Below are positions 42,801 to 64,000 of a DNA stretch of 64,000 nt, piece after piece (within the stretch, counting starts at the first letter, position 1; each line of letters starts with the position of its first letter). The notes below the pieces were generated by a model. The model was given only the letters and a program-made list of their open reading frames with translations, did not search any database and was not told the DNA's origin. The position numbers and the translations under genes are program-made. This stretch comes from Schmidtea polychroa (Eukaryota), in NCBI GenBank assembly GCA_044892525.1, contig CM097885.1, forward strand, positions 61,194,001 to 61,258,000, read 5' to 3'.

Positions 42801-45800
42801 AAACCGGAACAAAAAAAATTTTGAAATCGAAATTATATTCTGGAAGGATGTTGAATATATACATATTTATTATAAGAACTTTTTTCAATTTTCACCTCTG
42901 ATTTATTTTCAATTGACATTGTATTTATAAAAAAAACATCGATCTCTTTAATATTTTAGTATACCATTTGCCAGTCTATTTCGTGTTTTTGCCAATCAGC
43001 GCCGTGCTGTAACTTTTGGGGGCCCTGTGCAGAAACTAAAAATTTTTTTTTTTTAAATTTGAATTAATTTTTTATTGATTGTATTTAAAAAAATAATAGC
43101 AATTATAAAGTAATTTTTCTAGCTCTTTTGCTGGCAAATTCATCAATTATGTCATTGTAATCAATTGTTCTGGCTGTTGCATTTTCAATTGACAGTATTG
43201 CTAATCCAGAAAGTCTTTCCTGCGACATAGCAGACCGTAGATAATTTTCAATTAATTTTAATTTTGAAAACGATCGTTCACAATGAGCAACTGTAATAGG
43301 TATTGTTAAAATTATTCGATATACGATACATACATTTGGATATAATTCTTCCAAATTCCTTTCTAAAATGAATTGAAAATTCTGCATAATAGTATAATTA
43401 TCTTCTAAAATATATTTTAAAATAGAAAGTTCATTTTTAAATTCCACTTCTTCAATATCTCCTTCTAAGTGCTTGACCAGATTTGTACAATTAGCATTGA
43501 ATTCATTTGTATTCATAGTTTTTAGCTTCTTATTATCGAAAAGAAAACCGAAATTTTCATTTAAAGAATTATACGATTCAAATCGTTCTTGCAATGAATC
43601 TTTTACAATATCGATTAATTTATAAAAATAAGAGTGTTTAAATTTATCTTCAGCAGTTATAGTTAGATGGTTACACTCATCATCAATTTCAGGAATGAGA
43701 TCATATATAATAACAGTAGTCAGCCAATCTTTTGAGATTACGTACTCTCCGTTTTGGTAATGGTAAACTAGGTTCTGGTGATTTATCAAGACATTCATTG
43801 TTTCTACTTGTTAATATTTGCGTATCACGAGAAGGCCGTTCAGTGAACTGTGCTATTGCAGTTATAGCAACCGATGACTCCCGGGCTTCTTTTATAATTT
43901 CTTCGAAATTGTTTTTAAAATCATCAAGCGATAACAGCATAGCACTTGTATGTTGTAATGCAATATTAATTGCCATATCTTTTCGCTGAAGCAATTGGCT
44001 AAAAATGTGAAGCTTTGATAACAAGTGATACCAAATTGTTGTTAATACAATAAATTCATAAGAATTTATTTGTTTTATTAAAGATGCAGCAAGAGTTTTA
44101 CAATCTGGGTAGGTATTTTTAAGTTCATCTAGCGCAAGACTAATTTCTTTAATCTGGCATTTCACGGCTTTTATACTTTTAAAGCGATATTCCCATCGAG
44201 TATCGCTGGGCGCCTTCAGATTAATTTTTAAATATTTTACTTGAATAGCCCATCGCTTTGTCGATGCAGCAAAAATCTTATATATATTATTTAATGTAGT
44301 GAAATAATTCTGACTTTTAATAGTGTTTTTTACACTATCTCCTATTACTAAATTGATGTTGTGTCCACCACATGGTGTATACCATGCTTTATTGTTGATT
44401 TCTAAAATTCGACTTTTCACTCCCTTATATTCTACTTTCATATTGCTTGCGTTGTCATACGACTGACCACGGCAATCAGCAATTTTGATTCCCAATACTC
44501 TTAATTCCTCAATAAGGACATTTGCTAAATTTTCGCCAGTTGAGAACAATATATTTACAAAACTTAAGAAACTTTCTTGAATACTTGGCTTTTGGTCCGT
44601 TATTTTAACATACCGAATAATGATGGACAACTGATCTTTTTTGCGAAAATCCGGTGTTGAATCTATCATAACTGAAAAGTACTTTGATGATTTAATATTA
44701 TTTACTATTATATGTAAAACTTTAGAAGCTAGTTGTAATATAATCTCGTTTTGAATTTTAGCGGAAAAATATGACGTCACTCTTTTTTCCGTTTCAGTTA
44801 TTGATTTTAAATGCATTTTTAGTTCTGGAACAAAATCAGAAAGTAATTCAATTACTCCCAAAAAATTACCATTATTCGGTTCAAAAAGGTTTTCGTTGCT
44901 GCCTCTAAAAGCTAAATTTCGTTCACTTAAAAACAATACCGCTTTTATAATACATTTCAAAATTATTCGCCACCTTCGTTTTTCTTTATTGAACACATCT
45001 TCATTGAGATGGTCTATTCCTGTTCTACGTTTAATATTAAATTCTAGAATTCGCCATTTATACGCTGATTCAAGATGTTCCTTTGAAGATTCATGTTCAG
45101 ATAACCGTTTTCCTGTGTGTGCATAGTCAGAAAATCCGCCATAAGTTAAGCTTATTTTTATCGATGAAAACAAACGGCAACAAAAGCAGAAAATGTTTCC
45201 TGTTGAGTTAGAATATAGAAGCCATTTTCTTAATTCTTTTTCACCATTTTTCATTTGCCGATAAAAAAAAGCGTCACTGAAACATCTTCCTTGAGAATTT
45301 CTTTTATAATGGATACCTTCTATACATTTTGGTGACTGCTCGACCAAAAACATCCGTTGTTTGTTGTCGATTTCAACAGGCCAAGTTGCAGGATCTAATA
45401 TATCATATTTAAATTTAGCAGATAAAGTACTGCTCTCTATTTGTGGATTATTAGTAATTTCTGAAATATTATCAGATAAAATATCGTCAATATTTACGCA
45501 ATTGGTTCCTGATTCATCATATACATTCTCGCTCTGATTATCATCAATATTTTGAAGTTGTGGCTCATTGACATTTTCTTCTACATTGTTTTCAAGTTGA
45601 GACATACTATTTGAATTACATATTTCAATTAAATTAGTGTTCGAAATTGATGAACTTTCGCCTCGTTTAAAAAATTTATCTAATGATCCAGCAAGCCTAT
45701 TTAATTCTGATGATTTCCGGACCTGTTTTGCTCTTTTTTGTGCGCCGCTTTCATAACATCTTTTCGACATTTCTAATTGAGGTGAAAAAATTTACAAAAA

Positions 45801-48800
45801 CAACAGTTTACCTGATGTATTTCTTCTATAAATTTGAATGTATGTATATGTTTTCAAACTATGTTCGTTAACACAAATTTAATTTGAAAAGTGAAAATTA
45901 CAATTTATTAAATATATAAACGAATCGTTAAACCTAAAATTAAAATAAAACTTATTTCTGTTTATAACTTTGAAATAATATTACTTTTCACTAATAAGAC
46001 GATATAATAAACAAACAGAAGATAACAATTTGAAGCAAAAAACAACTGAATTATTAGGTATATTTGTTTCAAATTAAATCGTTGCCAACTAGATTTTTTT
46101 GAAAGTTAAACGAATTTTGAATTTTCAAATTTTTTTTTTCTTTCAATTCGTAGTAATTTATGGTATTGGAGAAGTTTTTCTAATGTATTTAATATTTGGG
46201 GCCCCTCAAAAATAGGGGGCCCAGTGCGATTGCACTTGTTGCACTTGCGATAGTACGGCGCTGTTGCCAATGAATTTCGTTTTTTCATAAATATAAATAA
46301 AAGTATTTCTTTTAAATAAATAATAAAAATTAAACAATTAAATTTTGTTTTTTATATAATATTAAATTAATTATGTTGCATTTTTTATTTTGAATTTCAG
46401 TATATCTTAATCATCGTTAAATAACCCATATGTCTGAAAATAGAAGAAATATTGAAAAAAACAAATCTGTAACTTATGATAAAATTGCTAATGCTTCTAG
46501 ACAGAATTTAATTCGTTTTGTCTTCGAACAAGGCTACGGTGTTAAAGATGCAGCTGCTATTGTTCAAATTAAATATTCAACTGCTTTGTCAATTGTTAAA
46601 AATTATAAAGAAAATAATAGCTATGCACCAAGGAAAAAAAGGCGGAAGCGTTAAGTCAGTTATTACGCAAGAAGTAAAATTATTTATAGAAAATGAAGTC
46701 TCATTAAATCCAGCAATTAGTTTGAAAGAGCTTAAATTAAAGACAGAAAGTTAAATTGGAACATATTTTACAATTTCAATTTCTAGCATTAACAGATGCT
46801 TGCAAGAATTAGAGATTACAATGAAAATGGCTCATCGGGAGCTTGATATCGTTAATCATCCTGATAAAATTCCATTACGAAAAAATTATGCATTGTGGTT
46901 CAATAACCATTTTAATAACGATTATTCTCGTGTAAATTTTATAGATGAATCTTCGTTTAATCTTCATCTCAAACGATCTGTTGCAAGATCACCGAGAGGT
47001 ACTAGAGCAATTTTAAGAGTACCAAATATTAGAGGCAGATCAATTTCTTTGATTGCTAGCATGTCAATCAATGACATGTCAATGTCATATTGCAAAACCA
47101 TTTTAAATTCAACAGTGAATGGTGATATATTTTGTGAATATTTAACAGAGTTATGTATTTATTTGAGAGATGTTGGTCATATATCAAATGCATGCCTTAT
47201 TCTAGATAATGCTACAGTTCACAAGAGAGTTGATTTGGAAAGAATTACTTCTGAGTTTAATTTTGAATTTAATTTTCTTTCACCTTATTCTTACATGCTA
47301 AACCCAATTGAAAACGCATTTTCAAAAATTAAAAATGAGGTTCAATCACGCTTGCGCAGCGGGGTTACAGAAACACTTGCGAATATTATGCTTGAAGAAA
47401 CTAATAAAGTTACATCAAATGATTGCATTGGATTTTTTAATCATATTCAGCATAATATTACAAATGCGGCTGCCGGATTAGAATACCGTATATTTCGGCG
47501 TATAAGGCGACCGTCAGATAAGACGAGGTACAAAATTAGAGCAAATTTTTTTGATTTATCATATATCGGTTGTAGTAGTATAAATACAACTAGTATAAAT
47601 ACAACTACCTGTACTGTAATACTTTCTTTTATATCGGTTGTATAAGACGACCCACAATTTTCAAGGGTGATTTTTTGACTTTAAGGGTCGTCTTATACGC
47701 CGAAATATACGGTATATACATTATTAAATATATTTTTTTATTTTTTTAGTTATTGATTTTCTTATATTAATTATTTTTTAAGCTTATTATTTCAATTAAA
47801 TTTCTTTTATTTTTGAGAAAACGAAATTCATTGGCAAAAACACGAAATAGACTGGCAAATGGTATAAATACAATTGCAATTGAAAAGAAATCAGTGGTGA
47901 AAATTGAAAAAAGTTCTTATTGATTCTTTATGATTTAATAAGCATTAATTCTCACCACATTAACCATTCTACCAGTATTATAATTACACTCGAGAGTGTA
48001 GCTGTGAACTATACCCAAGTGTTTCCAAATTGCAACTCGACCAGCTCCTTCTTTCGAACTGCCATCTCGCTTATCGCGTGTGTACATATTCTTGAGACTG
48101 AAATTACACCCTGAAAAATCAAAATGAGGACTATTCAGAGAAATTAATTTCGGATATAACAAATTCGAAATCATTTCTGTTTCTGAATCCAAGCAATTTC
48201 CATAAATAAAACAACCGCGTTTGGAGCAATGTCCGTGCAAGTCCACATAAAAAGCTATTCCGCTTTTATGCGGTGATATATTCGATAAAGATGAATCGGA
48301 CAAATGAGCACTGTATTTAATAAGGCATTCATTATTTGGGAGATCTTTATCAGATTCTTCATCTGATCCTTCGTTTCCTATTTTCGGTTCGGTTTTAAAA
48401 TTGTTTCTCATTTGCAGTTCCTTTTTCATTTTCGACAGCTGAGCTGAACTTAAAGTTATTTTGTTAATTTTTTTCGAAGAAAACTTCATAGAAACTATTG
48501 CAGGTCTCAGAGGAAGAGGAATCATTGAAGTGCTTAATTTTTTAAAAGGTTTCGACAGTTGCTGAAGTGAGTTTATTTCGGGAGATATTTTGAAATTTTT
48601 TAAATTCCACTGATGCTCAGTTGTTGGTTTTGTTATTGAATCATTGGATTTAGACAACGAGTTCGAGCGTTTCGCCGCTATCTGTGCTAATTTGTACACG
48701 GATTTCATGCTATGAACTGGTGAATCTTTGACTTGATTTGAAAGATTTTGTGGTTCAATTGATGGAATGTCACTTTCAAAGTTTGAAATACGAGATTCAT

Positions 48801-51800
48801 TTTCGGTTTTTGAATCTACAAGATTGTTACAAAAAGGTCTGTTTGGCAAGATATCCGCTGTTGAATTTTCCACATCAATTGTTACTTCGAGATAATCATT
48901 ATGCAATCCGGATTCATCTTGACATATTTCGTTATTCTAAAAGAATTATTAATTAACGACAAAATCCATCAATTAAATTATGAATATTTAACTGAACTCC
49001 ATAAGGAATTCGAAACAGNNNNNNNNNNNNNNNNNNNNNNNNNNNNNNNNNNNNNNNNNNNNNNNNNNNNNNNNNNNNNNNNNNNNNNNNNNNNNNNNNN
49101 NNNNNNNNNNNNNNNNNNNNNNNNNNNNNNNNNNNNNNNNNNNNNNNNNNNNNNNNNNNNNNNNNNNNNNNNNTGATACCCAGTGCAAATCCCAATAGTA
49201 GACTAGTTTCAAGCTTTTGGCCCTCATCAGTACTATGCAGGAGACGCGAACAAATTGTAGAAAATTTTAAAATTGAAGAAATTTAACTACTCATGTACAT
49301 GCATTCAGTTTAACTACTTATTTAGCTATTTTAACCATTTGTATTTAGCCAATTTAGAAATGGCTTTCACGTAATTTTTTTTTATTTAAAGTAAACTTTA
49401 AGGCTTGAATATTGATCCATATAGATATGAGATCATTATTCAAGCTCTTAAATAATACTTTTGATCAACATTTTTTATTATAAATTATTTTTAATTAATT
49501 TGTCAGGAGTTTTAGATGTTATTATTATTTAGAATTATTTCAATATAATGTGTTTTATTATTATTTTATTAAGTAATTAAGTAACAAATACAATTTATTA
49601 ATCGCCAAAAATATCAATTTTTTTACAGCATTTAGAGGAAAACGGTAGATGTATTGAAAATAGTTTTTTAAATTTTTATATTCGTCTTTTTTCAGCTCAC
49701 TTTCCAGGCCTCAGTAATTAAATCAAACCTCCTTTCGAATGACATCGTACTGAAGCCAGTTGCTCTTGATATTGTTTTCCTTATGCTGCATTTTACCTTG
49801 TATCCGGTATCATTCAGTTTAGAAGTTAATTCATTTATAAAAAGTTGGTAGGTATCCTTTTTGTAGGATCCTACAATTAATTTTTGATGTACTGGCCCTT
49901 TGACACCAATAGCTAGAACCAGTGAAATATTTGGCCCTCGGTTACTTGCCACTGTTGCGTAAATACCCTCACCTTTCTTCTTAATGTTTGGCTTGTCCAA
50001 GTGTTGAAGCTACATTCATCAATGTATATCAATTTGCTTCTTGGAACCATGTCAAATATTCCATTCTTTTTTCTAGGACGCGATCTGAATTTCGTGCAGC
50101 TACACATGGTCGGATTTTTTTTACTGAAATTAAACTAAAAATCTGCAAATTGTTGCATCATGTAATTGCACATTTCTTAAAGTGATGCATAGAAGTTTTC
50201 TTTCACATAATCTAGCAATTGATTTCCATGTATTTCGGAAATTTTTTGATTTCTGCCATCTCGTCTTCCTGTGGATATTTCTGCAAATTTTTTATATTTA
50301 TAAATTATATTTCTGATTGATTCTTCGCGAATTCCTAATAATCGCCCGAAATTATAAAAATCTTCCCGTTTTCCATTGCATTGACTAACCGGATTTTGTC
50401 AAGTTCTGAAAGTCTATAGAAATATTATTTTTAAATTTAGGTTAATAAAATTTACGATTTTCTAGTTTTATTCCCAACATCGGACGGCAAAGTTGAGAAA
50501 TACTAAAAAACTATTAAATTTATTAATAATTTAAGATAAATCTTAGGAAATAATGTCTTCATTATCTATAGAACTCAAAGTTCAGTTTTCGGAATTTTTG
50601 TTAAAAATTTTTTCATTGATTTTTTTCTAAAAAATTCTAAAATTGTCTGTAAATGATTTATTATAGTGCGTTTATTCATCACAACGAATATATATATCGA
50701 AAATTTTCAATGCATTTTTTACTATGTGTTGTTTTTGTGTCAGTTTATTTTTTCTACCACTTTCTCACTTTCTATATTAAATGCGTTTATTCATTGCAAC
50801 AATAAAGATCAACACACAGGTAAGTTTGTATGTTTATATAATATACACATTGACTTTTTTAATATTATAGATGCGTTTATTCAGTACAAACGGGTTATTA
50901 ATTATTTCTTTATAAAAAACTTATTGCCAGAAAACTGTCAATTTTATTCAAAAAACTTAATGATAAATGCTTCAAAGTTGTAAATCAGATTTCAGGAGTT
51001 AAAGCAGATATGATCAACAACTCCAAGACTGCCAAAACTTTGTAATAATCCATAAAATTTTATTGATTTATTTTTGTAAAAAATAAGACCAAGTTTGTTA
51101 ATGAAATATTTATTTAACCGCAAAATCTGCCGTTGCCATAATTAATAAAAAGATGATTTACTCAATAAATGATTCCCCGACGTTTGATCCCGCGAAAATT
51201 TTGGCTCATCTTGTTTGATAGTACCAATACTCATATTCACTACATCATTCGACATATCAGTCAATTTATATTCATTCATATTACGATCCTTAGCATTATT
51301 CATACATTTATTAAGAGTCTCTTTTAACGTTAACAATAAAAAACCGTTTTGAGTAGCCATTCTTCACCAGTAATTCAACTAATTTATCTACACTTTTTAC
51401 TGAATTTTTAAAAGTGGAGGATAAGCACCATGATCGATAAACCAATCTTTTCACCATGTTTCTTTTATATTTAAATTCACAAAAACTCTGGGGTAGTATA
51501 GAGGCCGGTATCTGCTGGTTTTCTGTAAATTTCTGTCCCAAATTGTTCATATTTACGTTTAATTAACAAGTCAAGAAATGCTATGGATGAATCCTTCTCA
51601 GTTTCACATGTGAATTTATTGTTCTTATGCAATTTATTCATGTAATGCAAAAAAGGTTTCATATGTTCCTTATTTTTAAATATCAGAAAAATAACATCAA
51701 CATACCTTTTATACACAATTGCTTTTTCATATTGAAAAGAAGTAATTTTTATTTGTAAACATGCCAAAAATATTGACGCCATTGTTGGTGTTAAGGGGTG

Positions 51801-54336
51801 ATAAGGGCGAACCCATAGCCACTCCATCAATTTGTTCATATATATATATACACTAGAGCCTCGAGTTGCGTCGTCAATGCGTTCCAATAAATCGCGACGC
51901 ATCTCGAAACAACGCAATTCGAATTTTAATTTTGTATACATTTGTATTTGTTTTTATATAATAGGTTCCGATAAAATCTGAAATCCATGTTTTTAAAAAA
52001 AAATTAGTTATATTGCTACATATTTAAATAAAAAATAGGTATGAATTGATTAACTATTATTTAATAAGTTTTATTAAACCAAAAACTAATGCAAACATTA
52101 ATAGAATTTTAAAATAATGTAAAATAATGAAGCAACATAAATTTATAGAATTTATTCAGATTCTTATTCATACGTTGGTTCAGGATTTGGCGTTTGCTCT
52201 TCTTTTGGTTGTTTTATTATAAAATTATTCAGAGTTATTTGAACTGCTTTTTGTTTTTTATCCAAATAAATTTTTTTATAACAGCTGATGGAGGCCTCTA
52301 CAGCTTGAGTAACCTTTGTACTTTGATCAGTATCTGGATCTTCTGCAACAAATATTTCTAATGCCTCAGATATTAATTTAATTGCTTTCCCCATACCCTT
52401 TGTTGTTAATTGTTTCACTTCTGGTACTTCTACGGAATTGTCGTCATTCTCATAAATATTTTGAGCCATTTCAATTAAATCTGCGGTACTAACATCAAAA
52501 TCCTCTTCTACGTTTAAAATTTCATCGAAATCGGCCTCGTCCAATCCTTCGAAATGAGCTTCTTGGGCTAAGTTAACTATTTCTGCCCGAACAAATGGCA
52601 CATCGTCAACTTCCGTAAAAGTTGCTGTACATTCTGGCCATATTTTTTGCCATACACCATTCATACAAGAGGATTTTACTTCTGCCCAAGAATCACCAAT
52701 ATTTTTAACAGCTTTCAATACATTGTAGTTTTTCCAAAATACAGCCATAGAAGTTTCTTCATTTGCATCGGCAGCATGCAGTAGCTGTTTAAATGTCCAG
52801 CGAATATAGTATGACTTAAAATTTGAGATTACTCCTTGATCCGTTGGTTGAATAAGTGAAGTTGTGCTTGGAGGCATAAATAAAAATTTTACATTATCTG
52901 ATAGATCATCTATATATGTTGGATGTCCTGGTGCATTATCCAGTAGTACCAATATTTTAAAAGTTAAATTTTCCCGTTTGCAATAGTTTTTGAACTCAGG
53001 AATGGCGCATTTGACCAACCAATCAACAAACAAAGAAACAGTGACCCAAGCTTTTTTATTAGATCGCCAATGCACATGAAGATTTCTTTTATCAACACCT
53101 TTTAGAGCTCTAGGATTCTCAGCCTGATAAACTAACAATGGTTTTAGTTTGAAGTCACCATTGGCATTGCCTCCAAGAAGTATAGTTAGGCGATCTTTAC
53201 TTACTTTAAAACCAGGTGCAGAAGATTCTGTTTTCGCTATATAGGTTCTTTTCGGCAGACGTTTCCAAAACAAACCTGTTTCATCAATATTAAACACCTG
53301 TTTAGAACTGTAGCCACCTTCCTGTATAACAGCCTTCAATATTTTATTAAAATCATTTGCTGCTGTGAGATCTGCACTAGCTGCCTCACCTTTCAAATAA
53401 ATGTTGTGCAGATTTCCGCGAAATTTAAAACGCTCAAACCATCCACCACTAGCGTTAAATTGTTCATAAATTGCTTTATTGGATATTGGAAGTTTTTCTT
53501 GCAGATCATCGTAAATAGATTTGGCTTTGGCTTGAATAACCATTTTGCTCAGCGGTATACTTTTTTGAGTTTGATGTTCAATCCAAATTAAAAGTAGAGA
53601 TTCCATTTTAACTATTAATGCAATTCGATTTATAACAGTACTTTTTAATTGGGAATCTGTTGCTGCTTCATATAATGTTTTGATTTGTTTTGCATCGCGA
53701 TTGCAGATAGTTCTTACTGTTTTTGGAGCTAGCCCGAGAGCTCTGCCAATGAAAACCGCTTTTTCTCCCGCTTGGAAACGTAAAATATCATGTTTTACGT
53801 CCAAAGATATTACTTTTTTATTTCTTTTCGTAGATTTTTTACCATTTTCATCTGACGATCGTTTACGATTCATAATTCTATTCTACAATAGGGCAATAAA
53901 AAATATTTCAAAAAATCAATTACAAACCAAAAAAATAATAAAAAACAATAAACAAAATGTAATACCTTTGAGAAATGTATATATATTGTAATTGAGTTTT
54001 TAGAATTTAAAACAATTATTATTAAAAAAGCAAGAAACACTTAAACGTTATAAGTTATGCAAACAACTAAGAACTAGACTTTTATACTAATAAATACACA
54101 ATAAAAAATTATTTCATTTGCAGCTGCATTTAAAAATAAATCATGGCATTCTAGTTTCGGTTTAAAGTTTAATTTTTGAATATAGACGTTATGCTATTTT
54201 TTGATTAAATTTTATTTTAAAACTTTTTTTCGACGCATTTCGAAAATTAGCAACGCAACTCAAAATTAGGGTATCGAAAATTTTTTTGGCGCAACTCGAA
54301 AGGACGCAAGTTGGGACAACGCAACTCGAGGCTCTA

Positions 54337-54370
<34 letters not shown>

Positions 54371-57300
54371 TCTTTTGTTTAGTTTTGCAATTAAACAATT
54401 TACGTTTTGGGCACCTCCAACAAATTGAGTCTTTTTTAACTTTATGTCTCCAAAATTCAAAATTTTTATGAACTAATGAATTCTGCATCCTTTTTGTTAT
54501 TCCTGTAATTAGCTCCATTTTTATTAAGAATTTGTTAACAGTTTTAAAAAAACTGTTGGTTTTGAAAATATACTATTTAACTATTTGGTGTTAACATGAC
54601 AAAAATAAAATAAATAATGTAGAACTTTTCATTAAATAAAACATTTGATAGTTTAATAATTAATTTTAAGATTTAATAATTCTTAAAGAATTATAAATTA
54701 AGAGAAAAATGGTTATATTTTTTGGTATAAAATTCTTAATTTTCTGCAAATATTGGCTTTTCAAATTTAAAATATATTTAAAAACTATTTAAAAAAATTT
54801 GGAGGATCAAACGTCGTAGGGATCAAACATCGGCGAATCAAAAGTCGGAGGGATCAAGCGTTATGGCATCTCAATAAATATACTTACATCATCAATAGTT
54901 ATTTTCTTAAATGTTTTAATTTAATTTGATTTAAAACATTATTAATTTAATGTCATCCTCATATCCTCAGGGATGTAACATTTACCGCCCCCCCCCAAAT
55001 AAATTATAGATTATCGAATATAAATTATGGATGAAATATTTTAATAAAACTTTATTTTGGTTTTGTTGTGAGAATTGAATGAGAATAAAAAAACTAAAGA
55101 AAATGGACGAAGAACTTCAAAATTTTAACAATCTAATTGATTTCTATCAAAAAGATATTGATTGTAACAGAAAAACTCTCGAATATGAGTTTAAGCTGTG
55201 GTACAAAAAAATTTGAAGAAATTAAAATCAAACCGACTACTGCAATATGTGATCCAATTTTTTATAAATATATTTATATTCCTATCACAATATTTGCCAC
55301 TTTGCTGGTATTAACTTGTATCATGGATGACAAAAGGTTAAACGGTTTGGCTTTGTTATATATTCATCAAGACATTAAAATAATTCCGGATGAAATACTT
55401 TCTGAATTAATGAAGGGATAAAGACGAATTAATATTATATTGTAATATATTCTATGTAATATACATTGTTAATAATTAATAATAAATTTGTTAATTATCT
55501 TAAAATATTTTTTCAATTTTTCCGTGTCAACTTTTAACATTGCTCGATGAATTGCAATAATTAATAATTTTGCCCTCCCCAAGCTAAAGTCCTGGCTACG
55601 TCCCTGCGTATACTCACGATTATCATTTAACAACAAAAAATTATTTTTATTTTCAAACAACAGTGTAAAAAAATTTATTTGATTTACTTTTATTTAAAAA
55701 AATTTATTTTGTCTCAGTAAATTTGGGAGTTCATTGTGAACCAATGTTTTCTATAGTCGATAACTAAATAATGATAATAGAAAACATGTAAATAGATCAC
55801 AAGTGAAAACAAGATAAATAATTTTACAGTATATTTAGATCAAATTTTAGACAAACTTCAATGAAATAATGAATATTTATTTTGAAATTTTGGAAGTATA
55901 GGTAATTAAAATGTTATAATCAAATCTACATCTTTAGGAAACAACAAATGCCACTAACCAAAGGCGGCAGTATCAATTCTTGCGGATTTTTTGATTGACT
56001 TCCCATAATATTTGTAATGATTTCCTCGCAGACTGAAAATTCCATTTCTTTTGAATTCAGGACTCGATTGCTTTCAAAGCATTTATCAATTATGGGAATA
56101 TTTTCATCTTTATTGTTTTCACAGATTGGCTTGTTAACGACACCAAAAACATTGTATTTTATATTGTTAATGAAACCATCTGATTCAGAGCTATTGACAA
56201 TATGATGATATACCAAAAGAGATTTGGCAGCATAAATTGATGGATGATTGTTGATATCAGGATACAAATAAACACGGTTTAGATTAACACCCCTTGTNNN
56301 NNNNNNNNNNNNNNNNNNNNNNNNNNNNNNNNNNNNNNNNNNNNNNNNNNNNNNNNNNNNNNNNNNNNNNNNNNNNNNNNNNNNNNNNNNNNNNNNNNNN
56401 NNNNNNNNNNNNNNNNNNNNNNNNNNNNNNNNNNNNNNNCCAGAAGAAGAATTTCAAAAATGCATTTATTGACGACTTTTGAAACATAATCCAACACAAC
56501 TGTTATCATTTCAAGAACATCACTAGTTACATTTATCACCGGAGACAAATCAGGTTTCATATACACGTGCCTTTCTTTATTTCGTGATCTTTCTTTCATT
56601 AAACCCAAATCGTATCTTTCAGATTCATGAGCGATTCTTTGTACTTCAATAGGGACAAACATAGCTCCATTACTTTTAGTTTTGTCCAATAGTTCATATT
56701 TCATATCACATAAATAATCTTCATTTTGCTTTCCAATCGAAATATTACTTTGATCTTTGCTTTGTGAATTTGTAGACTTATCTTTCATTGTGATATTAGG
56801 CAGTGGGATGTTTATTGAATACTTGGATAACGGCTCTGATTCTTTAAGATTTTCTAAATCTTGGATAATACTAGAAAATGTACAAGAGTTTTTCATTTTG
56901 AAATTGTCAGATTTGGGAAAATCAAATGAACGAAACTTGTTATTGAGCATATTTTGAATTTCTACTTTATATTTGTAAGAATATACATCATCATCATGTA
57001 TCAATTCATTTCCAATGATACGAGAAATTACGTCAGACCTTCTTTCAAATGCATCAGTTATGGAGAATAGAGCCACTGGATGAATATTAATTTCAACGAC
57101 ACCTTCCATTTTTTTCTCCATTTTAAAAAACCACCAAAAATCTGCTGGTAAAACAAACTCTAAAAAACTCTTTAAAAAAATCAATTTACAAAAAATCAAA
57201 AATAACTTTTGAATAAAATTCGAATATTCCAATTCTTCGCGTCTGTGTGCGCAGATCAATTTGAAAACAATTCCGCACACAGACGCGACAAAAACCAAAA

Positions 57301-57428: not shown

Positions 57429-60400
57429 AATTATTATTATAGTAATTCCAAATTCACCTACCAACAAATTGTAAAAAATGAATATTGTAAATTTTACGGA
57501 AAATCAATAAAATTAAATATTTAAACAAAAACTACCGGTAATGTCCATGATACACGCCATCGGGGTTGAGCAAAGGAATAAGTTTAAAGATAAATTGTTT
57601 CCTTAATTGAATGGATCGAATATCGTCTTCTCGCAATATGAATTCCAGAAAGCCATTAAAAACATGACTCGCTGGAGTTTCGCCAGGATGAACTCGAGAA
57701 GTAACAATGAATACCTAATTCACGATAAAAACTATTAAAAATTTCACATAAACTCCTGTGGCAGTAATTAGAATAAAATTTACAATAACAAACCTTTTTA
57801 TTTTTAAATTTCCAAGGTCTGCATTTATTGCCTGGAAATAATTTTTCGTCAAATATATCCTCGCGTTCATTTGTCAAACCATGCAAATCAGAAATTGTCA
57901 ACAAATCTATTCGTCGACCATCAAGAGATTTTGTCAACAATTCTCGATTATAGTATATACTACTTGGCTCCATATTATGTAAGTGATCGAAATCGGTTGA
58001 TCTTACAACAGAAAATCTGGTATCCAGATCTTCCAACTGTTTCTGGCAGTCTGTATAGGACCAGGGATAACAAAACGCAAAATATGTTGTGGAATTTTTG
58101 ATTTCGGAAAATCTGTGCATAAATGTTAATTGGAAATTGTTATCACTTGTTTCCCACGTTGGACGAAATCGGATTCTATACCATCTAAATCAAATGTAAT
58201 TTTATAAAAGTTTTACCATTTTTCATTTTTTAAAACGTTGCTTACTTGTGAGATAATTTAAAATTAAAAAAACTAAAGTTTATAACTAAGAATTCAGTAT
58301 TTTAAACAATTAGCAAGTAATATTAAGGAAACGTCAAAAATAAAAACTTTAATTAATGATAGAAAACTTAAATGAAATAATAACTTTCGGTAAAAAAAAG
58401 TAGTGAGGCGTTTGCGTTTTTGCCGCCTTTAGGTAATACATACTGATGCACCCAATTTTTATTAAGAAAATTAAAAATATATAATTATAATAAAAATAAA
58501 TTTTAATAACAATTTATTTAATAGCAAACAAATATATAGGGTTGCCAGATTTTCACCGAGACAAACCGGGACGTCTGGCAACCCTAGTAACTATATAAAA
58601 ATAAAAATAATAAACCAAGTATAAATATAAAAATCAATAAACTCACATATTTTAAAATAATTTAATAGCTTTAAATATTGTAAATAAAAAAGTAACTTTC
58701 CCACGACGGCCACAGATTAAATTAAACAAAAACAAAACTTAACCATCTGTCATTCATAACAAAAACAAACTACCCAACAGGAAAAGTTTCATATTAAAAC
58801 CCATCGAACAAGAAAGCTAATTCGAAAAATAGAAAAAGTGTGATAAATAAACGAAACTTTGGATGCAGTTGTCCTCCAAAATTTTTAATTTTGTTTGCAA
58901 TATTGCAATGCAAAAAAACCAGGACAATTGAGCGTCCCGAAGACCTCTTTCGGGAGACCGGGACAATGATCTCAAAACCGGGACAATCCCGGAAAACCGG
59001 GACGTCTGGCAACCCTAAATATATTATTGTTCAAATTTCTTTTAAATACAAATTACAATAAAAAGCACTTCAAAAAATTGTTCTATATTGTATAAAAATA
59101 ATAACTTTAAGTTTGGAATAAAAACAGTTAAAGAAAATAGTTATTGTGATTTAAATTGTTCAAACATGAAATTGCAATTGTGTGAAATTCTTAAATTGCT
59201 CTCTCGTAATAAAAAATAAATCCCGCAAAGAAATTGCTGAAACAAAAGTAACTCAATTTCACACGTTCCTAGGGATATTGTGGAAATCAAATTTAATTCA
59301 ACATTGTGCACAATGAATACGAGCAATATACTTTCCATTAGAACGCGTTTATGCAACATAAATACGCGCAATATATGTTCTCTTGAATACTTTTTTGAAT
59401 CAAGAATTAAAAAAAGTAATGAAATTATTTTTTAATGTATATTTTTGATTATAATTAATAATAGATTTTAATGTTTTGATTTTTTGTACAAAATCTTGCA
59501 AACTTTGCAAACTTGAACCACACCATTTTGAATGGCTTTCGTAGATAATTGCCTATATAAGTAAATACACCCATGGTTTAAGGATATTCTTCCGTGACGC
59601 TCATGTATACCAATTAACAATATATTAAATATGAAAATAGTTGATCCAATTGCGGCTTCAGAATTTAATCAGTATAATTTCAATAAAACTAAATTTTAAT
59701 TAAATTACTTATCTTGAAAAATAAGATTAACTCTCTTCAGAATTTAATCAGTATAATTTCAATAAAACTAAATTTTAATTAAATTACTTATCTTGAAAAA
59801 TAAGATTAACTCTCTTCAGAATTTAATCAGTATAATTTCAATAAAACTAAATTTTAATTAAATTACTTAATTTGAAAAATAAGATTAACTCTCATTGATA
59901 GAGATTTAATAAAATTCATCTTTTAAAAGTATTTTAAAAACAAAAGCCTTAAATGTTATTTTTAAATATCGAATTGTTTTAATTAATACTTATACTCAAT
60001 AATACTGAAATCATTTCACATTTTAGACAGGTTGATAAAGATAGTAAATAAAAGTATATAGGTAGCATAGAATTGACCTAAAAGATGTGTTAGTGAAACT
60101 GGCATTGTATTGAAAAATTGTAACCAAGTAACGCATAAAAAGAAAAATTTACAGAGATTTACACTTTGGACATTGAATAGATTGCTAAATTTACTTTAAT
60201 TCACAGCTGACCTACCAGTCAATGTCTATAATACTTCGAGTACTATTTGTAGATTTAAATGATTTAAATTTTTTGGTTTTAGAATATTTAAAATATTAAT
60301 AAAATTATAAAGAATTTTTATTTATTTTCGACAACAGGAATATAAATACAACAAACTATATCTTTATACCTATCAAATTATATTTTTTTATTTTAATCCA

Positions 60401-63201
60401 TTTTTATCCGAGTTAATTTTGTTAAAATTTTTCTCAAATTAATTTTTTTCTACCTTAGAATCATATGGAATATCAGATTTATTTTTTATGAAAAGTGCAA
60501 AAAATTCATTTGAAAAAGGCAGTGCCGAAAATTCGTGAGTATCAACAAACATCGATATATTACTGATTTATAGTCTTCAAACTCTCTTTTTAATAAATTC
60601 AATGAAAAAAATAATCAGTGATGAAATTGGATGGAATAAAAGTTCTTATAATAATAGAGAATATAATGTAGTTACTTTGAAGCCTTATTACTACATTCAA
60701 ATTCAAGGATTCCAATGCAATGTTACTAATTACTTTTAAAACCTCATACATACTATTCCTTAAAAAATACGAATATTTTTCTACTGGGAACTTTGTATTT
60801 CTATAAGTCTGGAATGTACAATAGGATGGATTTAAAGTAAAGAAGGAAAACTTTTTTGTCAATAATTCATTTGTCAATAGGCCACCTAAGCTTTCTACAA
60901 TAGGAGAAACAACGATACAATCATAATTACAATGAAAACATTTTTTCAACGCAAACCATTGTCATTTAAGAAATATAGTATATTAGCTGTCGAAGTATCC
61001 ATTTATTTTATACGGGATATAATCTGCCTTTGTATTGAATGTTGGAATTATTGACCGAGATTCAAGTCTCGACCTGATAAAACCGTCTTTAGACTTCGCG
61101 CTACAAACTGCTACAGGCAATTATGTGACGAACTTGACACACCTTTTGACAGTGTATGACAGAAACGTATTATCAGAAACTTCACAGTGGATTTTAGTCA
61201 TTTTTTCGTTTTAGGTTTATGATTAAAATCCACTGTGAAGTTTCTGATAAATGATAAACTTAAACTTCATATAATAAGTGTTTATTTATAGAAATAGACA
61301 TTTGAAATCATCTTCAGTACTCTGCGAATCTGTTTAACAACTATCTTCCTTATTAAAAAATTTATTCGTATTTCTTAACTCCTGGAATTCTTTTTTGTAA
61401 TATATACTTAATAATCAATTAAACAAAAATAATTAAACAATTAAACAAGTCGATTCACCTCTTCGGAAATAATAATAATATACTGTCGTGTGCTACTGCT
61501 ATGAAACTAGTCCGATTTCCTATTTTTGTATATGTACGCTTTACAGCTTTCCTAAAGCTGCACAAAGACAGCGCTCGCTCTTCATTTAACTTCACCTCGA
61601 AAATGTTAAGGAAAGATATGTCATTCCAAATACTCTGAGAATTCGAAATGAACTTATCTCAACCTTTATCGCATCATTAGACTTGCTCTCAAATGTAGAT
61701 AATCAGGAAAAACCAAATTCCGAGACGAATTCTTGAATTTTAATGCGTCTGCAAACTAGTAGTTTCATTTCAAGAAAAGACATTAATCTGTTAGATTAGA
61801 TATCAAACTTCTATGTTAAAACAACCAGTGCTTCTTTCTGGTTCACGAGAAAGTCACAACGGAAATTAAAGTAAAATACTACACTTTCATTAAATTGATT
61901 CCAGCTTACAAGACTGGCTTGTAGTAGCCACTTGATTTTGCTAATAATTGTCGTTTCCAGGTTTTTATAATAAAAAATACGATGAATACTTGAGGCCGAA
62001 TAAAATCTTTTAAAAAAATTGGAAACGAAACAAGGCTATTCCTTGGATCGTTGAATGAACAAAGACAAGAAGAAAGTAAGACAATTCGAATGGACTTTAT
62101 ATCCAAGTCTTTCTATCCAAACAGATCATATCAGCCTTTACGCGAATGATTCAATAATGAACTGAACCGAGAGGCCTAGTTAGAAGATTTTTAGAACTTT
62201 GCAACTAGAAGGAAATCTTATACATTTTTCGATGAACAATCTCATAATTGGGAAGAAACTTCATCTATCAAAGGCTAGAGGCATCTGGAATATATTCTGA
62301 ATAATAATTAACTTTGTCCTGAAAAACTTTAATCTACATTGAAAATTCAAAAGAGCTGAATGAATATTTAGATGAAGATGAAAAGAATAAAAAAAGAACC
62401 ATGACTGAAATTCGAGTTGAAATCTTAGCTTTTTCTCGGATCTTAAATACTAATATTGAACTTATTATCCTGAATGAAGATTTGCTCGTTGATGAAACAA
62501 TTAAATTTGTCATATCAAGCTGCAATAAATTTGTCAGTATTGTAAATATGAATAATTTATTTGCATTTAAGAATAATTTAAGTAAATAAAATCGTTTAAA
62601 GATTGAATTTATTTTAAGACTAATTAAATATATTCCAAAACCTGGACAAAAAACTCTCACATAAGTTTCCTTTACCATAATTCATTTCTTTATTTTTAAT
62701 TTCATCAATATTTTATTTTTTTCCCCATAATAATTTTTTCATCAAAATTAGTTCCACCAGAAAATGATTTTATTCATTTTAAACATTGAAAAAATCATTA
62801 AAATATTTAATTAAAACGAATTATGATATAATTTAAAAAAATATATTTAAACATAAAATAAATATTAACTTATTTTCTCCATTAGCAGTCTCTGTTTTGA
62901 ACAACGGACAGTATCCTTGAGAATAAAGTCTTTGTTGACGATTTAAATTTTTAATTGTAATTTTAATAATTCTACTAGGTAAATATCCTCTAACAGAGAA
63001 ATGAAACCACGTTCGATTACCATTTTCGAACGGAGTCCCATAACAATCAGGTTTTGTCCAGACGTTAAATTCATAATCAGGTTTATTGGAATCTGATTGA
63101 GTAAACGAATGATCTTCATTGGATATAATACGTTCAACATTTAACAAATTTCCAGAATCAAAATTCGATGAAAAAACCAAATTCCCATACTTAAATTCCA
63201 T
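30388..63201 (-). CDS. AGBL5: Cytosolic carboxypeptidase 5 (AGBL5/CCP5, M14 tubulin deglutamylase), multi-exon gene span
   Basis: Exons 63201-62870, 58184-57794, 57714-57536, >=56297-55959, 48936-47956, 37457-37269, 33878-<=33423, and probably 30859-30388. Splice phases are consistent wherever both ends are visible. Motifs [50 protein letters not shown]. The 3' end is uncertain because of gaps. Confidence 0.9.
31420..31844 (+). mobile_element. 3' end of a Charlie/ZBED5-type hAT element
   Basis: [39 protein letters not shown]...KQAQPSN-stop; terminal aaaggttgggaacccttg. Confidence 0.7.
32560..32900 (+). mobile_element. Possible MULE FLYWCH N-terminal relic
   Basis: [32 protein letters not shown]...[12 protein letters not shown] resembles FLYWCH zinc fingers; broken. 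Confidence 0.35.
33423..33878 (-). CDS. AGBL5: AGBL5 exon 7 (3' end in gap), Ser-rich tail
   Basis: ttttag|[14 protein letters not shown]..., open frame into the gap. Confidence 0.7.
34220..34299. mobile_element. 80-bp hAT micro-MITE
   Basis: TIR CAGCGTTTCCCAAA / TTTGGGAAACGCCG with perfect 8-bp TSD TGTTAACC. Confidence 0.85.
34558..35589 (+). mobile_element. pogo/Tigger internal-deletion element, 1032 bp
   Basis: TIR CAGGTGACCCTCCTATAACAC, TA TSDs, residual transposase C-terminus (GGEGFEDMT..., [25 protein letters not shown]). Confidence 0.88.
35738..35891. promoter_or_regulatory. Two inverted pairs of a CGTCTGTGTGC motif upstream of the nested plus-strand ORF
   Basis: 35738-35749 / 35783-35796 and 35833-35847 / 35879-35891; the same motif pair occurs at 57238-57287. 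Confidence 0.45.
36086..36685 (+). CDS. Orphan 199-aa ORF, antisense-nested in AGBL5 intron 6
   Basis: 600-nt open frame in very AT-rich DNA, ATG start, helical globular composition, no transposase motif recognised. Confidence 0.5.
   Translation: MLICRISMSNIAKRCLFSIETRPCDRGSTRSLQIISGSNVNVIDNQDFYEFVYISKFLIDINSIFQSLSRGLEINDLISVNHEKTEEELQDMFMKFPQKFKDIRKLSETIYDIRDKKINLLTYEYDILFNRALTRINTIQMFISQSVEQLSNVSNSIMDQSQIIGHVKWFNKQWFCTNKACDAINYKEILLMCLRRKHE
37269..37457 (-). CDS. AGBL5: AGBL5 exon 6 (not in ORF track)
   Basis: tttag|[14 protein letters not shown]...[30 protein letters not shown]...NFQ|gtaatt; 189 nt, phase 0 at both ends. Confidence 0.9.
39538..42067 (+). mobile_element. hAT (Ac/hobo-type, BED finger) transposon, 2530 bp, defective transposase
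   Basis: TIR TAGGGTTTGCAA, TSD CATTCAAC, subterminal TACCCG repeats. zf-BED (CYDC...HLKLH), [31 protein letters not shown]. Frameshift near 41110-41130 and TGA at 41693-41695. Confidence 0.95.
42997..46263 (-). mobile_element. hAT (ZMYM1/DUF4371-type) transposon, 3267 bp, near-intact transposase with one frame break near 43700
   Basis: TIR CAGCGCCGT(G/A)CT, TSD TTGCCAAT. ORFs 45770-43701 and 43798-43103 contain a TTF-type finger (WLLYS...FCFCCRLF), [24 protein letters not shown] and CERSFSKLK. Confidence 0.95.
47486..47712. mobile_element. 227-bp Tc1/mariner-superfamily MITE
   Basis: 21-bp perfect TIR CCGTATATTTCGGCGTATAAG, TA TSD. Removing it restores the host transposase end GLEYIHY-stop. 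Confidence 0.92.
47956..48936 (-). CDS. AGBL5: AGBL5 exon 5
   Basis: cttttag|AAT; [23 protein letters not shown]...KEGAGRVA...[15 protein letters not shown]|gtgaga. Confidence 0.9.
49184..49239 (-). ncRNA. Minimal type I hammerhead ribozyme
   Basis: Minus strand: TGC ATAGTA CTGATGA GGGC CAAAA GCTT GAAA CTAG TC|TACTAT ...GCA. Full catalytic core, stem I ATAGTA/TACTAT, stem II GGGC/GCUU, palindromic short stem III, GUC cleavage triplet (cut 49201/49200). Confidence 0.8.
49690..50420 (-). mobile_element. Truncated IS630/Tc1-like transposase relic
   Basis: [13 protein letters not shown] then, frameshifted, [26 protein letters not shown]. Confidence 0.6.
51311..51840 (-). mobile_element. Penelope-like retroelement RT fragment
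   Basis: [53 protein letters not shown]; frameshifted. Confidence 0.8.
51851..54339 (-). mobile_element. pogo/Tigger transposon with intact 569-aa transposase
   Basis: TIR ACTAGAGCCTCGAGTTGCGT(C/T)GTC within (TA)n tracts. Confidence 0.92.
52164..53873 (-). CDS. Tigger/CENP-B-type transposase (HTH plus DDE_1, DD32D)
   Basis: [45 protein letters not shown]; uninterrupted. Confidence 0.92.
   Translation of the reverse strand: MNRKRSSDENGKKSTKRNKKVISLDVKHDILRFQAGEKAVFIGRALGLAPKTVRTICNRDAKQIKTLYEAATDSQLKSTVINRIALIVKMESLLLIWIEHQTQKSIPLSKMVIQAKAKSIYDDLQEKLPISNKAIYEQFNASGGWFERFKFRGNLHNIYLKGEAASADLTAANDFNKILKAVIQEGGYSSKQVFNIDETGLFWKRLPKRTYIAKTESSAPGFKVSKDRLTILLGGNANGDFKLKPLLVYQAENPRALKGVDKRNLHVHWRSNKKAWVTVSLFVDWLVKCAIPEFKNYCKRENLTFKILVLLDNAPGHPTYIDDLSDNVKFLFMPPSTTSLIQPTDQGVISNFKSYYIRWTFKQLLHAADANEETSMAVFWKNYNVLKAVKNIGDSWAEVKSSCMNGVWQKIWPECTATFTEVDDVPFVRAEIVNLAQEAHFEGLDEADFDEILNVEEDFDVSTADLIEMAQNIYENDDNSVEVPEVKQLTTKGMGKAIKLISEALEIFVAEDPDTDQSTKVTQAVEASISCYKKIYLDKKQKAVQITLNNFIIKQPKEEQTPNPEPTYE
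54968..55606 (+). mobile_element. Old non-autonomous hAT element
   Basis: Ends CAGGGATGTAAC / GCTACGTCCCTG, 6/8-matching TSD, dimerisation-domain relic [18 protein letters not shown]. Confidence 0.6.
55959..56297 (-). CDS. AGBL5: AGBL5 exon 4 (5' end in gap)
   Basis: [32 protein letters not shown]...; probable donor TTG|gttagt (phase 0). Confidence 0.8.
56440..57121 (-). CDS. EIF3F: Intronless eIF3 subunit F-like (MPN family) ORF nested in AGBL5 intron 3; divergent centre, 3' end in gap
   Basis: [27 protein letters not shown] matches eIF3f HPVILASIVDSYERR...[13 protein letters not shown]...[10 protein letters not shown]...DLSPV...[11 protein letters not shown] matches GVMFTPL...TERIGVDLI...DLQQV...LSTVLQYAEDV. 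The middle ~110 aa is unrecognisable. Confidence 0.65.
57238..57346. promoter_or_regulatory. Inverted CGCGTCTGTGTGCG pair plus GC-rich hairpin upstream of the eIF3F-like ORF
   Basis: 57238-57252 / 57274-57287 inverted; CCAGTCAGAGG...CCTCTGACTGG stem at 57310-57346. Confidence 0.45.
57353..57441. repeat. (ATT)n microsatellite
   Basis: About 29 imperfect ATT/ATC units. Confidence 0.9.
57536..57714 (-). CDS. AGBL5: AGBL5 exon 3
   Basis: After a 79-nt intron: [27 protein letters not shown]...[13 protein letters not shown]; donor CG|gtagt. Confidence 0.9.
57794..58184 (-). CDS. AGBL5: AGBL5 exon 2
   Basis: tttag|A TGG: (K)[11 protein letters not shown]...[11 protein letters not shown]...[19 protein letters not shown]...KNKK|gtttgt; 391 nt. 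Confidence 0.9.
58538..59016. mobile_element. 479-bp hAT MITE
   Basis: TIR AGGGTTGCCAG, TSD AAATATAT, CCGGGAC subterminal repeats, internal copy of the right end at 58564-58586. Confidence 0.8.
59656..59893. repeat. 3 x 79-bp tandem repeat
   Basis: cttcagaatttaatcag... starts at 59656, 59735 and 59814. Confidence 0.95.
61170..61250. repeat. Long near-perfect hairpin (32-bp stem, 17-nt loop)
   Basis: ttatcagaaacttcacagtggatttta / taaaatccactgtgaagtttctgataa pair perfectly, extended through one G-U. Confidence 0.85.
62870..63201 (-). CDS. AGBL5: AGBL5 exon 1
   Basis: [19 protein letters not shown]...[30 protein letters not shown]; donor AA|gttaat (phase 2). Confidence 0.9.
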
Positions 63202-64000
63202 TTTCTTACGAATAAAATTAAAATTGATTGAAAAAGAAATAAGCACACTTTAAATTAAACAAAGTAATTAAAAAAAACTTTGTACAATTTAGATAAATCT
63301 CGATATTTCAAATTTTACATTTAATTATTAAATGCAGCTGATTTAGCTTCAGCGCACACCTAATAAATTAACAAGGTCATAGTAACACAGTTAACCACAA
63401 GTTAAAACAAATCTAATTTTTTAGTATTTTATAAATATGTAAAAACAGAATTATAAAATTTGTCAAGAAATTCTGAAAATTTCATGAATTGTAGATGCAC
63501 ACTAACTAATTTTATTCCGATTTAATTTAATTCATATAACATAATGTATGTTCAGCATGTTGAGTGTTTTATTAAACTATTTAAAGCAAAATTAAAATTG
63601 TATTTAATTAATTTTAATTATTTTCACTGTTAAAAATATGGTACTTTTCTAAGTTATTTTATTTCATGTTTTTAAACTAATAAATTGGATTTAACTATGA
63701 CTTCGTAAAAATGTATACGCTATTAATTTTCTAATAAAATTAGATCATGGTCTTTCATATGGTAATACAATATAGTAATACCATTCCATCTATTTCATTT
63801 TATTGTTATTAATTTATTTTTATTTTTTTTGACCTGTAAGTTTTTAAAATACATATTTTATTTATAGATATGTTGATAATGTTAACATGTTGCGTTCAGT
63901 AATTTTATTTATTCATGTTTCACTTATCCTCAAGGTGTTATGCTCATTTACTTTGTATTACTTGAAACATTAATACAATTTTAAATGAACTTAGCGTTGG

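Follow-up and report, generated by a model that had tools for sequence, protein, structure and literature searches.

Does the hammerhead-like motif in an intron of a CCP5/AGBL5-like gene, directly beside an assembly gap, represent a genuine ribozyme, and is it a working element or the remnant of one? An earlier note on the 64-kb window (the whole stretch of DNA analysed here) had described a complete core, a GUC site, a 6-bp stem I extended past a bulge, a 4-bp stem II with two G-U pairs, and a palindromic ACUAGU in the place of a stable stem III. All of these features were read in the sequence (Table 1), the assignment to type I was borne out, and the motif is a real, complete but weakened hammerhead. 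The reading that we favour, at a probability of roughly 0.65, is that of a solitary canonical metazoan type I hammerhead derived from a retroelement and carried as a decaying passenger in the sense strand of the intron; "solitary" here refers to the visible sequence, with the N run excluded.

Table 1. Positions of the hammerhead, its surroundings and the host gene within the window
Feature	Position	Strand	Basis or detail
Whole type I hammerhead motif with extended helix I	49185-49247	-	Direct reading, descriptor and fold
Helix I, 5' strand, AUAGUA	49231-49236	-	6 bp with 49200-49195
Helix I, 3' strand, UACUAU	49195-49200	-	Partner of 49236-49231
Core box CUGAUGA (C3-A9)	49224-49230	-	Sequence reading
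Helix II, GGGC (49223-49220) / GCUU (49214-49211)	49211-49223	-	4 bp, loop CAAAA (49219-49215)
Core box GAAA (G12, A13, A14, A15.1)	49207-49210	-	Sequence reading
Palindrome ACUAGU replacing helix III	49202-49207	-	Sequence reading
C17 of GUC site; predicted cleavage 3' of it (bond 49201/49200)	49201	-	Motif position
45% G+C island enclosing the hammerhead, extending into the N run	49174-49250	-	Base composition
N run, 155 nt	49019-49173		Sequence
Penelope-like RT, internal fragment	51323-51911	-	Profile positions ~477-649 of 832, 193 bits
Downstream exon of CCP5/AGBL5-like gene	47935-48936	-	E = 4e-53 to solved CCP5 structures, residues 397-528
Nearest upstream coding piece (approximate)	56172-56267	-	Weak match to CCP5 residues 317-347, E = 0.005
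Further host-gene exons	57656-58120 and 62833-63246		Same gene

Anatomy of the hammerhead motif

All 11 core bases, together with U16.1 and C17, are present between 49230 and 49201, and position 17 is occupied by a base other than G. The core is bordered by helices I and II, and the structure opens at the end of helix I, as expected of a type I hammerhead. Folding extended helix I outwards by a 1-nt bulge (C 49237) followed by 5 bp (49242-49238 with 49194-49190), and then by a 2x2 loop and 3 bp (49247-49245 with 49187-49185). Two of the four helix II pairs are G-U, and one of these lies at 10.1-11.1, where the motif departs from the G10.1-C11.1 closing pair that is described as highly conserved in hammerheads.

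The palindrome allows two states of helix III. As a monomer, ACUAGU would form the A15.1-U16.1 pair closing a CUAG tetraloop; as a dimer, it would form a 6-bp intermolecular helix III, with a computed duplex energy of -4.8 to -6.2 kcal/mol. The palindromic stretch at 15.2-16.2 is a trait of Penelope-type hammerheads, and the literature agrees with the earlier note that hammerheads with a palindromic stem III are found in retrozymes and Penelope-like elements, where cleavage takes place mainly in the dimer. The minimum free energy fold of the monomer (-14.5 kcal/mol) pairs C3-G5 with UAGU, and the hammerhead-compatible fold was calculated at -9.3 kcal/mol. The stability of the motif fold was not above that of shuffled sequences (z = +1.19).

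A canonical metazoan shape and a probable retroelement origin

Canonical metazoan hammerheads have a helix I of 6 bp, a helix II of 4 bp and a helix III of 1-2 bp with a palindromic loop of 2-4 nt. The window motif combines a 6-bp helix I and a 4-bp helix II with a short, palindromic-loop helix III, which is also the hammerhead shape of retrozymes. It resembles the hammerheads of non-LTR retrozymes (axolotl HHR_Amex1 and newt satellite 2; PMC7229834, PMC4209133) in the length of both helices, in its one-pair helix III with a palindromic tetraloop, in its low-G+C surroundings and in the expectation of poor activity as a single copy and of activity in the dimer. For the axolotl retrozyme hammerhead, which also has a single-pair helix III and a palindromic tetraloop, cleavage reaches 6% in an hour in the monomer and is efficient in the dimer. 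In contrast to non-LTR retrozymes, the window motif is single in the visible sequence and has no visible tandem repeat, and it differs from canonical retrozyme hammerheads in having G-U for G-C at 10.1-11.1, a second G-U pair in helix II and an intronic position in the sense strand. Going by published descriptions, and with most of the putative insert lying in the N run, it is also similar to the SINE-like Sm-alpha elements of Schistosoma (PMC2770079, PMC6155905); these are short, dispersed, non-autonomous retroelements with one type I hammerhead each, and their host genome, like that of the window, is an AT-rich invertebrate genome.

The base composition around the motif points in the same direction. 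The G+C content of the island (~75 nt) is 0.45 compared with 0.21 upstream and 0.24 past the N run, and the island is likely to be what can be seen of the 5' part of an insert. Overall, the core, the helices, the rarity of such motifs in shuffled sequence, the G+C island, the canonical shape, the likeness of loop 2 to that of the HH9 consensus, the other transposon pieces in the intron and the parallels in two other hammerheads (L006 and L003, described below) argue for a retroelement relic, while the Rfam score of 18 bits, the G-U pair at 10.1-11.1, the unremarkable fold stability and the few chance motifs to be expected genome-wide count against it.

The proposed course of events would start with an insert, either a non-LTR retrozyme monomer or a truncated Penelope-like terminal repeat, of which the hammerhead would be the visible 5' part. 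The insert would have landed in sense orientation within a transposon-filled intron of about 7 kb. A lone copy is predicted to cleave slowly if at all, and two copies would be needed to form the intermolecular helix III of 6 bp; we infer slow or inert behaviour from the one-pair helix III, the two G-U pairs of helix II and the engagement of C3-G5 in the minimum free energy fold. With one copy per pre-mRNA, the hammerhead would most likely be a tolerated, decaying passenger that leaves the host transcript largely or wholly unaffected.

The Penelope-like reverse transcriptase fragment

The Penelope RT fragment that the earlier note had placed about 2 kb away on the same strand was recovered 2.1 kb upstream of the hammerhead. 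It represents one broken gene, spread over three reading frames with at least two frame changes and with both ends missing. A phmmer search with this fragment returned 5638 relatives. Relatives combine RVT_1 with a C-terminal GIY-YIG-type motif. No trace was detected of the GIY-YIG endonuclease part, or of the ~550 nt of ORF expected after the RT piece.

The hammerhead could be the 3' terminal-repeat ribozyme of the Penelope-like copy represented by this fragment, a reading that we consider unlikely. Penelope-like elements do bear hammerheads in their terminal repeats, the window motif lies downstream of the RT piece on the same strand, and in L004, a more distant relative at 39% identity, helices I and II are 5 and 4 bp long and the 6-nt palindrome reads ACGCGU. 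However, the part of the element that should come after the RT piece is untraceable, and the hammerhead is ~1.5 kb farther away than expected from the closest relatives, in which it follows the ORF stop by ~75 nt. The hammerheads of these closest relatives are also of a different type, with an extra U after A9, a helix II of 5-6 bp, a helix I of 3-4 bp and a UAUAU palindrome, and no minimal Penelope-type hammerhead was found in the 64-kb window. The link between the hammerhead and the RT fragment is doubtful because the endonuclease part is missing and the closest relatives carry this different type.

A similar picture emerged from the minimal hammerheads of Penelope-like elements as described by Cervera and de la Pena (2014), including those identified in relatives of the neighbouring RT fragment (L001, L003, L005, L008-L012). 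These share with the window motif the type I topology, an association with retroelements (in the window, the RT fragment) and the replacement of a stable helix III by a palindrome at 15.1-16.1. Unlike the window motif, they have a nucleotide after A9, unpaired between A9 and G10.1, a helix II of 5-8 bp and a helix I of 3-5 bp, and they lie at most ~75 nt from ORF ends, whereas the window motif is not in a terminal repeat directly beside an RT-endonuclease ORF. In L003, a relative belonging to a Penelope-like element with an intact ORF, helix II is also closed by a G-U pair. The difference between the type of the window hammerhead and that of the closest relatives of the neighbouring Penelope fragment fits the coexistence of retrozyme-type and Penelope-type hammerheads in one genome.

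The N run and the tandem array alternative

The N run begins 11 nt past the last paired base of the hammerhead. The suggestion in the earlier note that this gap may hide tandem copies was not supported by the visible sequence: the N run does adjoin the motif, but the visible 64 kb holds neither a second copy nor a tandem repeat. No other or decayed hammerhead copy was identified in the window by BLAST, our descriptor, or repeat and tandem-repeat finders. If the hammerhead were the first unit of a short array of retrozyme or Penelope-like repeats continuing into the N run, neighbouring copies would pair through ACUAGU and cleave the intron RNA, from which small circular RNAs could be released. 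A palindromic helix III is a hallmark of dimer-dependent hammerheads, the G+C island runs directly into the N run, and short-read assemblies are known to break at Penelope-like structures in tandem or inverted arrangement. We nevertheless regard such an array as rather improbable: the 82 nt past the N run are AT-rich and bear no resemblance to the hammerhead or its upstream sequence, tandem repeats are absent from both visible sides of the run, its nominal 155 nt corresponds to the lower limit of known retrozyme units (150-450 bp), and retrozymes in Xenopus have been found to be depleted from introns.

A rod-like fold of the hammerhead together with its upstream flank was sought by folding and was not found. 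The sole strong structure near the upstream flank is a separate palindromic hairpin at 49394-49454.

Statistical support for the motif

The frequency of comparable motifs was assessed with a descriptor of our own, which demanded a helix I of at least 5 bp and a helix II of at least 3 bp and accepted any short, palindromic or hairpin helix III. The hammerhead was the only match in the window. Of 3000 dinucleotide shuffles, 14 contained any match at all and 1 an equally good one, to which the helix I extension adds a chance factor of ~0.11. A large genome as a whole would still be expected to contain a few motifs this good by chance. One further occurrence of CUGAUGA followed by GAAA, at 17160-17232 on the minus strand, was dropped; its helix II is open at the core, and helix I is lacking.

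Covariance models gave a different result, with no hammerhead reported for the motif at the Rfam gathering threshold. In E-value mode the top model was HH9, with 18 bits at E = 0.52 in 2.5 kb, the gathering score of this model being 52; in the alignment, the CAAAA loop 2 of the motif falls on the CAAAAA loop of the consensus. The Rfam hammerhead models likewise failed on the conserved Penelope-type hammerheads of relatives L001-L005, and the low score is therefore weak evidence against the motif.

The motif could also be a product of chance, an AT-rich genome having spelled the 11 core bases with pairable flanks. The sub-threshold Rfam score, the absence of a second copy from the visible window, a fold no more stable than shuffles, the G-U pairs of helix II and the many windows scanned at the first stage are all consistent with this explanation. 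Against it stand the shuffle frequencies, the exact coincidence of the motif with the local G+C island, and the fit of loop 2 and the helix lengths to the canonical metazoan type, a fit that was no part of the descriptor's demands. Weighing these, we judge a chance origin quite improbable.

Host gene and intron

The minus strand is the sense strand of the CCP5/AGBL5-like gene. The acceptor AG of the downstream exon is at 48938-48937, and C17 lies a nominal 265 nt upstream of the exon, 155 of these nt being N; the placement of the motif by the earlier note in a sense-strand AGBL5 intron, near the acceptor and beside a gap, was confirmed. From the next coding piece upstream (Table 1), the length of the host intron is estimated at ~7 kb. 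It contains several transposon pieces, which suggests that insertions of this kind are tolerated there. The window also carries an intact pogo transposase and a Tc1 transposase. The ORFs at 49692-50107 were considered as a Tc1-like remnant and dropped, as they have no Pfam match and no likeness to the Tc1 transposase of the window.

The position of the motif recalls the amniote hammerheads HH9 and HH10 (Rfam RF02275; introns of RECK and CTCL), with which it shares the type I topology, a sense-strand intronic location and an A-rich loop 2. In contrast, the HH9 consensus has a stable 3-bp helix III and is deeply conserved, and the window motif has no such helix III and falls short of the gathering score. 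A domesticated ribozyme that tunes the processing of CCP5/AGBL5 pre-mRNA in the manner of intronic hammerheads known in amniotes would agree with the sense orientation close to the acceptor and with the intronic HH9 as top Rfam match, but is highly improbable given 18 bits against 52, the lack of the HH9-type helix III, the weakened helix II and a host intron that serves as a transposon dump. Taking together the ways in which the hammerhead might be kept in the sense strand for a function, either cutting with a second copy and release of circular RNA or slow tuning after domestication, we consider such retention very unlikely.

Significance and related hammerheads in public data

If a functional reading were true, the motif would represent in an invertebrate what the intronic hammerheads are in amniotes. 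Hammerheads of this shape number in the thousands in invertebrate and lower-vertebrate genomes, where they are parts of retrozymes and Penelope-like elements, and another solitary example contributes little. A copy on the sense strand of an intron is nevertheless the raw material from which the conserved intronic ribozymes of amniotes are believed to have arisen, and because retrozymes are reported to be depleted from introns, tolerated intronic copies are worth counting.

Searches of the literature on hammerheads in planarians and on mir-753 revealed nothing specific. Scanning with the core pattern gave no match in viral contigs and two matches in metagenomes, L006 and L007. L007 has no helix I and is probably a chance match. 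The L006 hammerhead has the same ACUAGU and the same G-U at 10.1-11.1 as the window motif, together with helices that are different in sequence and still pair. It is credible as an independent natural hammerhead, and no Penelope-like ORF lies nearby.

A candidate hammerhead in the sense strand of a CCP5/AGBL5-like intron

Re-reading of the minus strand, which is the RNA sense, revealed a complete hammerhead motif within the interval marked in an earlier note, and all the anatomical details claimed there were correct. In the predicted fold helix I continues outward through a one-base bulge, five pairs, a 2x2 loop and three more pairs, so that the full structure occupies 49247-49185; 11 nt past it an N run begins (49019-49173, nominal 155 nt). 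The CCP5/AGBL5-like gene is encoded on the same strand, and with the acceptor AG at 48938-48937 the distance from C17 down to the exon is nominally 265 nt. The claimed location, in the sense strand of an AGBL5-like intron beside an N run, was thus confirmed by the CCP5 matches and the acceptor position. Besides a pogo/Tc5 transposase ORF, the host intron, ~7 kb long, contains a Penelope-like RT fragment and further, unassigned sequence.

Features of the hammerhead, its host gene and other elements (window positions unless a metagenome contig, L001-L012, is named)
Feature	Position	Strand	Details
Helix I, 5' strand	49236-49231	-	AUAGUA
Core	49230-49224	-	CUGAUGA
Helix II	49223-49220 / 49214-49211	-	GGGC/GCUU; two G-U pairs, one at 10.1-11.1
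Loop 2	49219-49215	-	CAAAA
GAA	49210-49208	-	
Palindrome	49207-49202	-	ACUAGU
C17	49201	-	base 5' of predicted cleavage
Helix I, 3' strand	49200-49195	-	UACUAU
CCP5 ORF piece	47935-48936	-	human CCP5 solved structures, residues 397-528, E = 4e-53
CCP5 coding piece	57656-58120	-	residues 140-250
CCP5 weak match	about 56172-56267	-	residues 317-347
Cytosolic carboxypeptidase N-domain	62833-63246	-	
Conserved minimal hammerheads	L001 2097-2137, L008 2286-2326, L009 1590-1630, L011 694-734, L012 2325-2365		
Variant minimal hammerheads	L003 260-298, L005 2296-2338		
Pogo/Tc5 transposase	52164-53873	-	DDE_1 + HTH_Tnp_Tc5; 569 aa, uninterrupted ORF
hAT-like protein	43701-45770	-	DUF4371; 689 aa, uninterrupted ORF in or beside host gene introns
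Tc1/mariner transposase	46800-47645	+	DDE_3; 281 aa, uninterrupted ORF in or beside host gene introns
Direct repeat	50667-50890		19-27 nt, three copies, spacing 115 and 90 nt; between RT fragment and hammerhead
Weak Penelope-like remnant	20129-20281	-	11.6 bits, E = 0.007, profile 625-676; weaker piece near 19800
N runs (five)	20480-20663, 32075-32316, 33283-33422, 49019-49173, 56298-56439		irregular lengths, 140-242 nt
U4 spliceosomal snRNA gene or pseudogene	37714-37844	-	50.8 bits; Rfam gathering score 46

Cervera and de la Pena (PMC4209133) distinguish two kinds of hammerhead in animals. In canonical type I, helix I has 6 bp, helix II 4 bp and helix III 1-2 bp under a palindromic loop of 2-4 nt; the minimal Penelope-type lacks helix III, has 7-8 bp in helix II and 4-5 bp in helix I, and carries one additional nucleotide behind A9. 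Judged by its sequence, the window's motif is canonical type I (helix I of 6 bp, helix II of 4 bp, and CUAG closed by an A-U pair), a known kind of hammerhead to which it adds one member. Its loop 2 aligns with the consensus loop CAAAAA of HH9 (Rfam RF02275), the intronic amniote family. The 10.1-11.1 pair is G-U, unlike the G-C pair called highly conserved in the literature; this G-U is common to the hammerheads of L003, which comes from a Penelope-like relative whose ORF is intact, and L006. The latter (2243-2280, minus strand), on a G+C-rich metagenome contig without a Penelope-like ORF, is a credible independent type I hammerhead that has ACUAGU as in the window and helices that differ in sequence yet still pair. 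Most likely, the window's hammerhead is a solitary, weakened, retroelement-derived type I copy, a passenger in the intron; it matters little unless RNA-end or conservation data show action.

Predicted cleavage and the question of tandem copies

In the monomer the lowest-energy fold (-14.5 kcal/mol) would bind UAGU to C3-G5 and the final helix I base, blocking the core, and the hammerhead-compatible fold (-9.3 kcal/mol) would be ~5 kcal/mol costlier. If two copies came together, their ACUAGU segments could anneal (-4.8 to -6.2 kcal/mol) into a helix III of 6 bp, the arrangement of the classical double hammerhead. A single copy per pre-mRNA would require two transcripts to meet, so little or no cutting would be expected. 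The axolotl retrozyme hammerhead, in which helix III is likewise a single pair under a palindromic tetraloop, reached only 6% cleavage within an hour when monomeric but was efficient in dimeric constructs (PMC7229834).

A partner copy would be present if the motif were one of a tandem series continuing into the N run. The hammerhead coincides with a 75-nt island of 45% G+C, compared with 21% in the 450 nt upstream, 24% in the 82 nt beyond the N run and ~31% in the whole window; the island resembles inserted foreign DNA, of which the 5' end is visible and the rest runs into the N run. Its continuation there would suit tandem copies, as would the assembly breaks known from Penelope-like tandem or inverted structures. 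However, no repeat was found on either visible side of the N run, the 82 nt on the far side are unrelated AT-rich intron, the nominal run length of 155 nt falls at the bottom of the range of known units, and a 2026 preprint reports that Xenopus introns are depleted of retrozymes. The visible sequence argues mildly against tandem copies.

Relationship to the Penelope-like RT fragment

Searching the representative library with the ORF at 51477-51941 (minus strand) yielded 5638 relatives, and the long ones combine a mid-protein RVT_1 with a C-terminal GIY-YIG-type motif, which identifies them as Penelope-like elements. The sole strong Penelope-like region in the window (51323-51911, outer bounds, minus strand; about profile positions 477-649 of 832) is one broken gene in three reading frames, with at least two frame changes. 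Neither end is preserved: the N-terminal half is gone, as are the linker and the endonuclease part in full. The earlier note had placed such a fragment on the hammerhead's strand, 2 kb away, and it was found there at ~2.1 kb; the note's background statement, that Penelope-like elements carry minimal palindromic hammerheads, also holds in the contigs fetched for the relatives. Members of the closest clade (55% identity) have a conserved hammerhead ~75 nt past the ORF stop; where copies stand in tandem, it overlaps the beginning of the following ORF. Its helix II, closed by G-C, has 6 bp and its helix I 3-4 bp, a U is added behind A9, and the palindrome is UAUAU. Helix II covaries between clades in the variants of L003 and L005 and at a second site in L008. 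L004, a relative further removed (39%), also shows the additional U; its helix I pairs 5 bp and its helix II 4 bp, its palindrome is ACGCGU, and the motif precedes the ORF by 49 nt.

It is improbable that the window's hammerhead belongs with the element of the RT fragment, for example via a rearranged copy. The type I assignment, the sense intron and the Penelope background of the earlier interpretation stood, but the hammerhead is of a different type from that in the fragment's closest relatives, its distance from the RT piece exceeds the expected one by ~1.5 kb, and nothing of the endonuclease part lies between them. No minimal motif of the closest relatives' kind was found in the window. 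The two may also lie near each other by coincidence, the intron being rich in transposons. The second, weak Penelope-like remnant is within about 200 nt of N run 20480-20663, and the RT piece ~2.1 kb from 49019-49173; both Penelope-like traces are therefore near N runs.

Chance expectation and other nearby RNA features

A general hammerhead descriptor (minimum of 5 bp in helix I and 3 bp in helix II; helix III allowed to be 1 bp, palindromic or a hairpin) matched the window exactly once, at the hammerhead. When the window was shuffled 3000 times with dinucleotides preserved, 14 shuffled versions had some match and 1 had a match with at least 6 bp in helix I and 4 bp in helix II; the chance of the helix I extension is ~0.11. 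Rfam did not report the hammerhead at the gathering threshold, and its best match in E-value mode was to HH9 (18 bits, gathering score 52; E = 0.52 for the 2.5 kb searched). This miss carries little weight because the same models did not detect the clearly conserved minimal hammerheads of the Penelope-like relatives. A chance occurrence, which would fit the sub-threshold score, a fold no more stable than shuffles (z = +1.19) and the few motifs of such quality expected across a genome of hundreds of megabases, is unlikely in view of the shuffle and extension frequencies and the coincidence with the G+C island.

Approximately 160 nt upstream of the hammerhead (RNA sense), a near-perfect 61-nt palindromic hairpin (49394-49454) is the source of the flank's only significant folding signal (z = -2.76). 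This hairpin could be a miRNA-like or MITE-like repeat; against Rfam mir-753, probably a planarian family, it scored 60.8 bits on the plus strand (gathering score 62) and 48.4 bits on the minus strand.
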